NCBI RefSeq assembly: GCF_048593235.1
Contig: NC_133620.1
Coordinates: 290,485,765 to 290,549,764 of the forward strand
Reading direction: 5' to 3'
DNA: 64,000 bases
Source: Sminthopsis crassicaudata
Lineage: Eukaryota
The number at the start of each line of letters is the position of its first letter. Within the stretch, counting starts at the first letter, position 1. The notes beneath the pieces are model-generated. The model worked only from the letters and a program-made list of their open reading frames with translations. It searched no databases and was not told the origin of the DNA. Both the position numbers and the translations under genes were made by a program. Positions 20,487 to 23,400 of the stretch are shown here, piece by piece.

Positions 20487-23400
20487 ATGAAGCCACTGTA
20501 CCTGCTCCTAACCTTAGGTGAGGTATTCCCCCGTTTCCCTGAGCCCCACTAATTGGCCTGCTAGTTGTGTCCCGACACTCTAATTAGGATTCTAGTACTC
20601 TAAGACCCCATTAAGATTGGGATCATGATGGGAGGTAATTCCTTGAGAACTTGGCCCTTTCCCCAGCGTCCCCTTCCTCTCCCTAGGCATACTAGCAGTC
20701 AGATGGTGCGCTGCTCGACTAGGGCCCTCAGAGTTGGAGTGCTGGTTTGTAGAAGAGCAGGGTGGTGGTAGGGGCATGCTTCAGGGAGTAACCAAACGAC
20801 CCGCTGTGCTGCTGCTGAGACAGGGGACTGGCGAGCCACCACCGAGGCCAGATCTTGACTCTTCACTCTACCTGAAAGTGCACGGTAAGTGTTCTGATTC
20901 GGACACCCCTGAGCCTCCCTCCCTTCCTGGCCTGGAAGGAACTTCTCAGTCTTGAGGCCTCAGCTCTGTCATCACCCCCTCCACTTGTAATTATCAAAGA
21001 GTTTGCATCAGTATTATCGGGGAAAGAGGACTGGATATGGAATCCAGAAACAGGTTCTCACATCTGAATTTTATCCTTTACTAGCTCTGTGAGCTTGGCC
21101 GAGTCACTTAACCCGAACCTGTAAAACGAGGATTGATATATTTGCTCAACCTGTCTTATACAGAATAGTTCTAAGAATTGTAGATTTAGACCGGAAGTAC
21201 CGAGGCAGTCATTTGGTCCAGAAACATCCTTTAGTTAGGGAAAGTGAGGCCAAAGACAATTAAATGAATTTCAGGAGGTCAGATTTGACTCCAGAGCCAG
21301 TCCCTTTTCCAGAGAATTTGGCTGAGTTAATGTTTGCACAGAGCTTTATATACTTTGCAAATGTGAGCCATCATTAATCATTTTATTTAAAAGTTCATTC
21401 TTAATTAGCATGATCATTCCTACTTCTAGGCCCCCTTCCCTTCATTTATGGAGGTTTTGCTAAATCAGTTCTCAGTCTCACTCACCTCCCTAATCTGCTC
21501 AGTCCCTCCCCTCACTCTACTCTGGGAAATTTACCTTCCATGCCACTGATCTGCTTTCCAGTCCTGACTCTCTTAGCTGATAACTCCCTCTTTCTCCTGC
21601 CCCAGATCCTGCTGGCTCTCTTGGGGACTCCCTGAAGGGATCAGTAGCCCCAAGCTGTGAGCTGAATCGGTATGTCCCAAGTCCTGCAGCTTCAGACTGG
21701 GCCGCTGTCCTAACCCCTGAGCCTTACTCTCCTCGATCCTTGGATGGGACTTGGCTGGTGGTTAGCCTATCTAGCCCCCACGTATGCCTTTCCAGCCTCT
21801 TGCAGCTGTCTCAGTCCCAGTCTGTCACCTCCTCGGTTTCCATAGCAACAGGTAAGGGAGAGAAGTAAGGGAGGGGGCATCTTGGAACTAAAGTCAGACC
21901 TAAGTGGGGTTTGGAGCTTTGAAAGTCAGAACTCTTATATATTTTTAATCACTTAAGATATTTAAAGGGGAAGGCACTTAAAGTTATTGCAGGACTATGA
22001 CCTGAGGGTCTTCTACCCTCTTCCCCTTAACTTCCTTCACTTCTTTTTCCCCTTTTCCTCATTCTTTTCAATTTCTTTCCCCAGCAAATATTTCCCCTAC
22101 AAAAGGCAACTGAGAATCAGGATAACTAAGGTTTTAATCCCAGTTCAACCACTGACTTATGACTGTGTGGCCCTAAGTGAATTACTTTCAAATATAGTCT
22201 CCCAGTTTTCCCTCGGTAAAATGAGAGTATCAGACTAAATGGTTTATAATGTCCCTTCTGACACATTTGTCTTCCCTTAGATTGCTTTCACATGTTGCAT
22301 AAATTGCCCTTTTATTCTGCCAACACTTAAGTTTGCTTTCTCCTTACTCCTTTCCCCTATTTTTTCCTGCCTTTTGGATAGACTTGTTTCTTCTCACCCC
22401 AGCCCCACCAAAAGTAAACTATGGTAAAGAAAAGGTGGAACAGTCAATTTAAGTATAAGGCAGCTGCCTCAACTATCTGACTGAAATGTAACTCAAAGGG
22501 CTCAAATGTACAATCTACTTTGTTTCTTCAATATTAAGTTTGTCCCTTCTACGGACATATGGCTCCACAGGATTTGTGGATTTAACTTTGAATCTCCCCT
22601 CGTGTCTAGCATAGCATCCTGTGCACAGCAATTTGATTTTGACTTCAGGCATCAATGGATAAATTGGTAGTTCTGCAGTTATCTTCCACCCCTTATAAGC
22701 CAGCTATTTATCATAAACATCAGTAAATAGTTCTTTCTCCATCTCTTTCTTTATTCTTATACCTTGCTTAACTCCCATCCTTTTTTCCACTAGGGGAGAC
22801 TGGAATGGCCCTGGGACAGAATTACCCCAAAATGAGACCAGTGTCTCACCTCCTACTGGGGTCTACTTCCAGTTTCCACTCAGTTTAGACTCCTTTTAGC
22901 TTTACTATTCTACTGTGTACCTCTATGAACTTGGTTCCCCTTCCCCTCAACCTTCCACCTATCCATTCCTCACCCTATACCAGCTTAGACTGTAGAATAA
23001 GAATGGGGTCTGTACATGGTCAATGGGTAGGTAGGTAGGTTAGTTTAAAAGTTTCTGTTAGTGAATTATCAGGTCTCAAGGCTAAGAAGGGGGGAGCAGC
23101 CTTTCAAAGATCATAGTGTTCTACATTCTGACATACACTCCCATCTCAGGCACCCATCTACTTTGTCCCCCCTCAAAACTAAGTGTATGTAATGAGACTA
23201 TTTAGGAGCACATTGTCATGACAACCAGGGAACTGAGAAGGGGAGTGTTGTCGAGGTGACCAGTGAGAGGGGAAAGTGCAAGAGTCTTCTTGTTTGGCTA
23301 ACTGATGGGGAGGAGGACGGGAAGGAGAGGAAGACATAGAAACTGGTCAAGACAAGGGAGATTGAGAGATAGGCTCCCTAAATGGAGTGCCCTCATTAAC

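Follow-up and report, generated by a model that had tools for sequence, protein, structure and literature searches.

The tapasin gene (TAPBP) of the fat-tailed dunnart (Sminthopsis crassicaudata) encodes serine at the position of Cys95, the residue whose thiol in placental mammals makes a stable mixed disulfide with Cys57 of ERp57. The explanation that we favour, with a probability of about 0.6, is that this is the expressed TAPBP gene, that the cysteine was lost on the marsupial stem, that marsupial tapasin may be regarded as a natural C95S mutant, and that ERp57 probably docks on it non-covalently.

Identification and structure of the dunnart TAPBP gene

The window, i.e. the whole stretch of 64,000 nucleotides that was analyzed, contains two runs of N (11449–11579 and 16575–16709). 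Positions 20487–25463 on the + strand are the single, syntenic, spliced, and expressed TAPBP gene of this species, which consists of eight exons. The exons and neighbouring genes are listed below, where X4, X12, X14, and X19 denote sequencing runs and joints are splice joints.

12247..13620, + strand: DAXX coding exon, upstream synteny marker (Pfam Daxx, 1.8e-43)
17449..19338, + strand: ZBTB22-type BTB/zinc-finger gene, immediately upstream of TAPBP (Pfam BTB, 1e-25, plus C2H2)
20487..20517, + strand: TAPBP exon 1, ATG and N-terminal portion of the signal peptide (joint 20514>20684, cut +3, in X12 and X19; GT donor)
20687..20884, + strand: TAPBP exon 2, remainder of the signal peptide, codon matching Cys7 (TGC, 20740–20742), editing ('scoop') loop (joints, AG/GT borders, human alignment)
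21606..21851, + strand: TAPBP exon 3, Cys71 equivalent (TGT, 21656–21658), ERp57 docking loop, beta-hairpin (joints 20883>21605 and 21849>23600)
23602..23997, + strand: TAPBP exon 4, Ig-like segment of the N-terminal domain with the EWRRQ hairpin for MHC-I contact and an NGT sequon for N-glycosylation (joints, human alignment)
24281..24622, + strand: TAPBP exon 5, IgC1 domain, Cys316–Cys383 pair (Pfam C1-set, E 2.2e-05; joints)
24730..24819, + strand: TAPBP exon 6, transmembrane helix carrying the conserved lysine K429 (joints, splice borders, predicted structure)
25103..25140, + strand: TAPBP exon 7, cytoplasmic tail (joints 24819>25103 and 25138>25450)
25452..25463, + strand: TAPBP exon 8, coding portion (K-S-Y-stop) at the end of the KKxx-type tail (splice borders, translation)
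30375..30713, + strand: RasGEF-domain exon of an RGL2-type gene, downstream of TAPBP (Pfam RasGEF, 8.4e-10)

The translation of the exon model comprised 450 amino acids and was a 100% match to NCBI XP_074167506.1 (tapasin isoform X2, Sminthopsis crassicaudata). All seven GT-AG joints were present in the X12 contigs and most of them also in X4 and X19, and the read depth of X12 was approximately 900 in the exons vs 70 in the introns. The GT-AG spliced joints found at all or most exon borders in X12 and X4 indicate that these contigs come from RNA. The genes DAXX-ZBTB22-TAPBP-RGL2 are all on the + strand, which is the conserved setting of tapasin in the extended MHC class II region, and their order was the same in the alligator locus. 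Thus, with a single syntenic orthologue and spliced RNA contigs, the copy addressed in an earlier preliminary description, made from this DNA alone, is indeed the expressed tapasin gene.

Human and mouse tapasin (PDB 3F8U, 6ENY/7QPD, 7QNG) are end-to-end orthologues of the dunnart protein, the human chains matching residues 2–447 with E values of 5e-158 to 3e-136, and identity to the eutherian cluster representatives was 58–60%. TAPBPR (TAPBPL in human nomenclature), a tapasin-family MHC-I editor without ERp57 conjugation, was only distantly similar, as its chains matched residues 181–399 in the C-terminal half (E 1e-14). This weak and partial match, together with the MHC-region synteny, rules out that the gene is TAPBPR. 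The TAPBPR gene lies at another genomic location than TAPBP, and its product does not bind TAP.

The dunnart protein has the architecture of tapasin, with a signal peptide, C29/C94 (the C7–C71 pair), C316/C383, a C1-set Pfam match, a helix at residues 411–438 containing K429, and the dilysine tail K-K-S-Y at its terminus. Features common to human, mouse, and dunnart are the C7–C71 pair, E72, the EWRRQ hairpin, the NGT sequon, the IgC1 domain, the transmembrane lysine, the KKxx tail, and the neighbours DAXX, ZBTB22, and RGL2. The editing loop of the dunnart protein is five residues longer than that of the human one.

Serine in place of Cys95

When exon 3 was compared with PDB chains by phmmer, it aligned to human tapasin without gaps (E 1.5e-15). 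Human residue numbers refer to mature tapasin (9sqm_D). Three short stretches of this exon are considered below.

21728..21730, + strand: TCT, Ser118 of the precursor, aligned to human Cys95 (exon 3 in frame; unchanged in four runs)
21731..21748, + strand: P-R-S-L-D-G codons (human P96 to G101), non-covalent ERp57 contact loop (alignment; invariant in 12 marsupials)
21785..21787, + strand: TGC, Cys137, at the position of human Ser114, an unpaired luminal cysteine (dasyurids only; unchanged in X19)

The alignment placed human C71 on the cysteine encoded at 21656–21658 and C95 on the serine exactly 24 residues further on. The preliminary description had read the codon as TCT, one base from TGT, and had quoted a gap-free peptide alignment to human tapasin; the in-frame reading of exon 3 gave the same codon, and the quoted peptide was correct. 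A check of the codon in reads or cDNA had also been proposed there. Contigs of X4, X12, and X14, which come from three studies of the same species, span the codon, and all their mismatches map elsewhere, so that TCT is unchanged in all three studies as well as in spliced RNA. In X19, which consists of RNA from a Tasmanian-devil-like relative, all seven differences in exon 3 could be located and none of them affected the codon.

It is hardly credible that the serine is due to a sequencing or assembly error, to a rare allele, or to a pseudogene or paralogue. Support for such an artefact was looked for and none was found, and it is ruled out by the agreement of three independent studies, the spliced contigs, the intact 450-codon frame, the synteny, and the RefSeq identity; the same residue also occurs in 11 other species.

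At position 95, where placental-type ERp57-conjugated tapasin has an unpaired cysteine in the loop that enters the active site of the ERp57 a domain, the dunnart protein has a serine. Judged from its coding sequence, a mixed disulfide of the Cys95 type, as in human and mouse tapasin, is impossible, and its loading complex would therefore be unconjugated or differently linked. This proposal of the preliminary description is in keeping with the gene as far as the missing Cys95-type bond is concerned, whereas a candidate for a different linkage (Cys137) was seen in dasyurids only.

The engineered human C95S mutant has the identical exchange at this position. Human tapasin with C95A or C95S does not hold ERp57, is present in smaller amounts, and leaves surface MHC-I less stable (PMC10040737; PMC12757076), suggesting that in human tapasin the non-covalent contacts are weak by themselves. 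The engineered mutations are, however, acute changes in an ERp57-adapted protein, whereas the marsupial serine dates back at least to the common ancestor of living marsupials. Since marsupial tapasin has carried the serine for so long and is under purifying selection, compensation would be expected in it.

Distribution of Cys95 and direction of the change

A survey of marsupials, another check suggested in the preliminary description, showed serine in 18 of 18 entries, representing 12 species and five orders from opossums to koala. Serine is fixed at position 95 in all 12 sampled species, which is more than chance, and the change is not a trait of this marsupial or of dasyurids, as had been supposed. 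Cysteine was found in 91/91 informative eutherian cluster representatives, in both monotremes (2/2), in alligator, and in about 19 squamates. Turtles, birds, amphibians, and ray-finned fish have serine, sharks and rays have threonine, and Vipera has serine at 95 with a cysteine at +3 in the loop. The absence of the cysteine is not unprecedented: C95 was reported not to be conserved in aligned fish and chicken TAPBP sequences (Grimholt 2018, PMC5824609). For marsupials, we found no earlier report of the loss in the literature searched, which omitted most subscription journals.

The third tapasin-family gene described in that study (its 'TAPBPL'), which is kept in marsupials and was lost in eutherians, might be thought to carry the ERp57 link in place of TAPBP, as a unique cysteine is found in the opossum gene 11 residues downstream of the site of C95 (PMC5824609). 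We regard this as extremely unlikely, as the same gene is also present in birds, turtles, and frogs, and the TAPBP gene examined here is intact, conserved, and highly expressed.

The codons bear on the direction of the change. In the four non-mammals with serine that were sampled (paddlefish, a turtle, a bird, and one transcript contig, possibly amphibian), the serine codon was AGC. Cysteine was encoded by TGT or TGC in alligator, Varanus, and platypus, and serine by TCT in the dunnart, with no change in X19. TCT has its first base in common with TGY and is one step away from it, but two steps away from AGC. We infer from this that the marsupial serine arose by a secondary Cys-to-Ser loss (TGY to TCY) on the marsupial stem rather than being a retained ancestral AGC serine; the marsupial codons compared here are those of dasyurids.

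According to the opposite reading, the mammalian ancestor had serine, marsupials never possessed the cysteine, and monotremes and eutherians gained it separately. Serine or threonine in sharks, ray-finned fish, amphibians, turtles, and birds would fit with this, and across amniotes amino-acid parsimony gave a tie, a single gain with three losses being no better than several gains that were independent. Simple retention is nevertheless disfavoured by the codons, with TCT in dasyurids vs AGC in every sampled non-mammalian serine, and within mammals retention plus two gains takes approximately four nucleotide steps, as compared with two steps if the cysteine was gained no later than the mammalian stem and then lost once. 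Retention thus appears very improbable, and secondary loss is favoured, though only within mammals.

Conservation of the ERp57 docking loop

Loss of the linking cysteine in marsupials was not accompanied by loss of the surrounding loop. The sequence S-P-R-S-L-D-G was invariant in 12/12 marsupials, with P96, R97, L99, D100, and G101 kept, and the invariant share among marsupials was 79% in loop 108–126 vs 62% in the whole luminal domain. The residues that make non-covalent contacts with ERp57 (P96, R97, D100, and the A217 strip) are kept (SPRSLDG, EGAVAFA); this list was taken from a simulation study of the human complex, in which R97 and D100 were persistent ERp57 contacts (PMC7140079), and not from the 3F8U crystal paper. 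In addition, the complex was intact in the 7QNG crystal structure even though no model of the mixed disulfide could be built (PMC9474470).

Marsupial tapasin would in effect be a natural C95S mutant, without covalent conjugation of ERp57 at site 95. Because the rest of the docking loop is conserved together with the EGAVAFA strip, which contacts the a' domain of ERp57, ERp57 would most probably still dock on it non-covalently, and/or be kept in the loading complex by calreticulin. On the other hand, the loop could be conserved because of folding or because of a partner other than ERp57.

Like those of marsupials, the tapasins of chicken, other birds, turtles, amphibians, and fish have no cysteine at position 95. 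In these groups, however, the serine belongs to the ancestral AGC codon family and the docking loop has diverged, unlike the dasyurid TCT and its retained loop. Bird, turtle, amphibian, and fish tapasins also retain an IgV-type cysteine pair (DCGF...YICT), which all mammals lack. Chicken tapasin is stable and active and binds MHC-I in the absence of ERp57 or co-chaperones, being functional without ERp57 in vitro (PMC10534222). The stability of marsupial tapasin would likewise have become independent of the disulfide.

The example of chicken also raises the possibility that marsupial tapasin is autonomous, with ERp57 not bound to it and the loop kept for structural reasons only. Chicken tapasin without the cysteine (PMC5824609) needs no co-chaperones, and human C95 mutants lose ERp57, so that loss of the cysteine may mean loss of the partner. 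We consider this possible but rather unlikely: R97 and D100 have been lost in serine-bearing birds and most turtles (SPAGLGG, SPLGLGG), whereas marsupials from didelphids to the Australian lineages keep SPRSLDG.

Cys137 in dasyurids

Among the 12 marsupials, Cys137 was present only in dunnart, Antechinus, and Tasmanian devil, where it is located 19 residues downstream of Ser118; the other marsupials have arginine or histidine. Non-dasyurid marsupials have four luminal cysteines (the C7–C71 pair and the IgC pair) and none to spare, and dasyurids have five.

Cys137 might make a mixed disulfide with a PDI, either ERp57 or another one. Dasyurids would then have regained, after the stem loss of Cys95, an unpaired cysteine at a new site and would use it to bind ERp57, or a different ER oxidoreductase, covalently. 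The odd number of luminal cysteines is the same as in human tapasin, the presence of Arg, Ser, Gly, or His at this site in other taxa suggests an exposed side chain, and Vipera shows that a cysteine can sit elsewhere in the loop. In the AlphaFold model, however, where its placement was judged from secondary structure and pLDDT and not from coordinates, Cys137 appears as the first residue of strand 137–144, just past the hairpin turn. At this end of the hairpin it would be away from loop 113–125 and unlikely to reach the active site of ERp57 in the known docking geometry, and the other nine marsupials would be left unexplained. Restoration of the conjugate by Cys137 therefore seems improbable. 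If true, dasyurids would have re-invented the disulfide-tethered loading complex independently and in another geometry.

Implications for marsupial antigen presentation

The preliminary description had linked the loss of Cys95 to the transmissible tumours of dasyurids. This idea of a dasyurid-specific change tied to the tumours was rejected. Since the serine is common to all sampled marsupials, it provides no specific explanation for the loss of MHC-I in devil tumours, which is attributed to down-regulation of B2M and TAP genes. The findings are also a caution to those who study marsupial immunity, devil tumours and vaccines included, that the loading-complex biochemistry of human and mouse should not be assumed to be transferable.

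In the peptide-loading complex of mammals, the tapasin–ERp57 disulfide conjugate is regarded as the functional unit of editing, and here a whole mammalian infraclass is without the linking cysteine, apparently by secondary loss, and has retained the docking loop. Marsupials therefore represent a C95S experiment of nature with long adaptation. From them one can learn which changes in tapasin give stability without ERp57, a property useful for recombinant tapasin as a peptide-exchange reagent and the reason why chicken tapasin was studied, and also whether tapasin can do without the covalent bond in vivo and what compensates for it.

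Orthology and gene structure of dunnart TAPBP

The tapasin gene in the window is the TAPBP orthologue, and it is already annotated in RefSeq. Spliced contigs of public runs contained seven GT-AG joints, giving eight exons with canonical splice borders at every exon.

TAPBP (exons from spliced contigs) and its neighbours
12247-13620, DAXX, upstream of TAPBP
17449-19338, ZBTB22-type gene, upstream of TAPBP
20487-20517, + strand, TAPBP exon 1
20687-20884, + strand, TAPBP exon 2
21606-21851, + strand, TAPBP exon 3
23602-23997, + strand, TAPBP exon 4
24281-24622, + strand, TAPBP exon 5
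24730-24819, + strand, TAPBP exon 6
25103-25140, + strand, TAPBP exon 7
25452 onward, + strand, TAPBP exon 8
30375-30713, RasGEF gene, downstream of TAPBP

The exons encode a 450-aa protein that agrees at every residue with NCBI XP_074167506.1 (tapasin isoform X2, Sminthopsis crassicaudata). Human tapasin chains matched it over the full length (E 5e-158) and TAPBPR only weakly (1e-14); the C7-C71 pair, IgC1 domain, NGT sequon, transmembrane helix with Lys and KKxx-type tail are all present; gene order is the same at the tapasin locus of alligator; and the search for relatives gave one tapasin cluster per marsupial species, with no second copy. The orthology rests on this match, architecture, synteny and single cluster, which also rule out a paralogue or pseudogene. 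RefSeq additionally predicts a 501-aa dunnart isoform X1 (XP_074167505.1) with two more cysteines.

Runs of N occur at 11449-11579 (131 bases) and 16575-16709 (135 bases), in or near the DAXX region. In intron 2, many contigs of three runs break at 21077-21114, flanked on either side by unrelated loose ends, as is typical of an interspersed repeat.

Serine at the Cys95 position

The translation of exon 3 (246 bp) aligned without gaps to human tapasin in a search of PDB chains (E 1.5e-15). Human C71 (mature numbering) corresponds to a Cys (TGT, 21656-21658), and human C95, 24 residues further on, to a Ser encoded in frame by TCT at 21728-21730, exactly as the preliminary description had read the peptide and codon.

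To verify the codon, contigs of four runs were placed on 20400-26399. Three runs from the same species and three different studies (X4, X12 and X14) all cover the codon and leave TCT unchanged; their 5, 11 and 8 differences from the window, respectively, are all accounted for and lie outside it. All splice joints are present in X12, where exon depth is about 900 and intron depth about 70, and X4 contigs also carry joints; thus, both behave as RNA. X14 has no splice joints and may be DNA. The run of a Tasmanian-devil-like relative (X19) showed seven differences in exon 3 (five tabulated, two read off a loose end at 23600), which reproduce four devil-versus-dunnart protein substitutions (A105T, H135Q, V150A and S155T); none falls at 21728-21730 or 21785-21787.

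Elsewhere in the gene, X12, X14 and X19 carry 24517 T>C (Ser370 to Pro). Since other marsupials have Pro, as do X12 and X14, the reference Ser370 is a derived allele at a polymorphic site. In X12, 20802 C>T and 24375 C>T are synonymous.

Distribution and direction of the change

Full-length relatives were found with exon 4, followed by word-index searches and cluster look-ups. The results showed that Ser is marsupial-wide and no peculiarity of the dunnart or of dasyurids: it was present in 18/18 entries from 12 species (dunnart, Antechinus, devil, bilby, koala, wombat, brushtail possum, tammar, sugar glider, Dromiciops, Monodelphis and Gracilinanus).

Residue at the Cys95 position outside marsupials
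Eutherians: Cys (91/91 informative cluster representatives)
Monotremes (platypus, echidna): Cys
Alligator and about 19 squamates: Cys, except Vipera (Ser)
Eight turtles, two birds, newt, caecilian, paddlefish, teleost: Ser
Four sharks and rays: Thr

All sampled squamates have C-P-R except Vipera latastei, whose G-S-P-R-C-L-E-G places a Cys three residues after the Ser; the hook could have moved naturally inside the loop here, or the difference could stem from gene prediction or sequencing.

Amniote-wide parsimony on amino acids alone was tied between loss and retention. In the fetched loci, the Ser codon is AGC in paddlefish, the turtle Emydura, the bird Accipiter and a transcript contig (possibly amphibian), and alligator, Varanus and platypus encode the Cys by TGT or TGC. 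Like the Cys codons of other mammals, the dunnart TCT begins with T. AGC to TGC and TGY to TCY are one step each, and AGC to TCT two. A Cys ancestor within mammals followed by a single G-to-C substitution in the stem lineage of marsupials thus takes two steps from AGC, whereas an ancestral Ser kept in marsupials, with two independent gains of Cys, takes about four. The Ser of marsupials is accordingly interpreted as a probable secondary loss, the marsupial codon evidence being from dasyurid DNA only.

Docking loop and luminal cysteines

The loop following the Ser, P-R-S-L-D-G, is unchanged in 12/12 marsupials, and residues 108-126 are 79% invariant in the marsupial alignment, compared with 62% for the whole luminal domain. 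Birds and most turtles likewise have no Cys, but their loops read SPAGLGG or SPLGLGG. Persistent ERp57 contacts of human tapasin include R97 and D100, and A217 touches the a' domain (PMC7140079); R97, D100 and the EGAVAFA strip are kept in marsupials, as are the MHC-I contact elements (E72, EWRRQ) and the TAP-binding transmembrane Lys. An AlphaFold2 model (mean pLDDT 80) gives values <50 for the Ser loop, 115-119.

Outside dasyurids, marsupial tapasins carry exactly four luminal cysteines, apart from a private extra one in Monodelphis, and thus no alternative thiol. The three dasyurids have a fifth, Cys137 (TGC, 21785-21787; human Ser114 position), seen in no other group, which makes the number odd. 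This site is Arg in other marsupials and monotremes, His in Gracilinanus and Ser in eutherians. In the model, Cys137 lies directly past the turn of a hairpin made up of residues 126-132 and 137-144, which would place it at the end away from the docking loop.

Marsupials have an editing ('scoop') loop in exon 2 (20750-20800; ECWFVE to KRP) that exceeds the eutherian loop by five residues and contains an M-L pair. Comparison of dunnart exon 4 (23602-23997) with protein entries P0014, P0025, P0034, P0157, P0192 and others showed that the canonical IgV-type cysteine pair, kept in every non-mammalian tapasin (DCGF ... YICT), is missing from all mammalian tapasins, whether monotreme, marsupial or eutherian (DLSF ... 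YLAT). An additional N-glycosylation sequon, N-A-T (residue 177, 23641-23649), is present in dunnart, devil and Dromiciops and absent from eutherian tapasins.

Functional implications

In human tapasin, a mixed disulfide joins C95 to ERp57 Cys57 (PMC9474470); with C95A/C95S mutants, surface MHC-I is reduced and less stable, and the amount of tapasin falls (PMC10040737, PMC12757076). The 7QNG crystal complex is intact though the disulfide could not be modelled (PMC9474470). Marsupial tapasin would be unable to form the C95-Cys57 bond; since the docking loop is conserved, we infer that non-covalent ERp57 docking is most likely kept. By analogy with chicken tapasin, which is intrinsically stable (PMC10534222), the marsupial protein has probably gained intrinsic stability. 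The covalent hook is truly missing, as first proposed, but the suggested relevance to dasyurid transmissible tumours is unsupported, because the Ser is common to all marsupials sampled.

Grimholt 2018 (PMC5824609) already stated that conservation of human C95 does not extend to the remaining TAPBP, TAPBPR and TAPBPL sequences of their alignment (fish, gar, chicken), which contained no marsupial, monotreme or reptile TAPBP. Literature searches, which missed most subscription journals, found no report of marsupial tapasin without Cys95, of Cys95 in monotremes, squamates or crocodilians, or of the new dasyurid Cys. Although the marsupial change is limited to one residue of a known gene, and birds and fish provide precedents, it is a clean natural experiment on a feature of the loading complex that is standard in textbooks.
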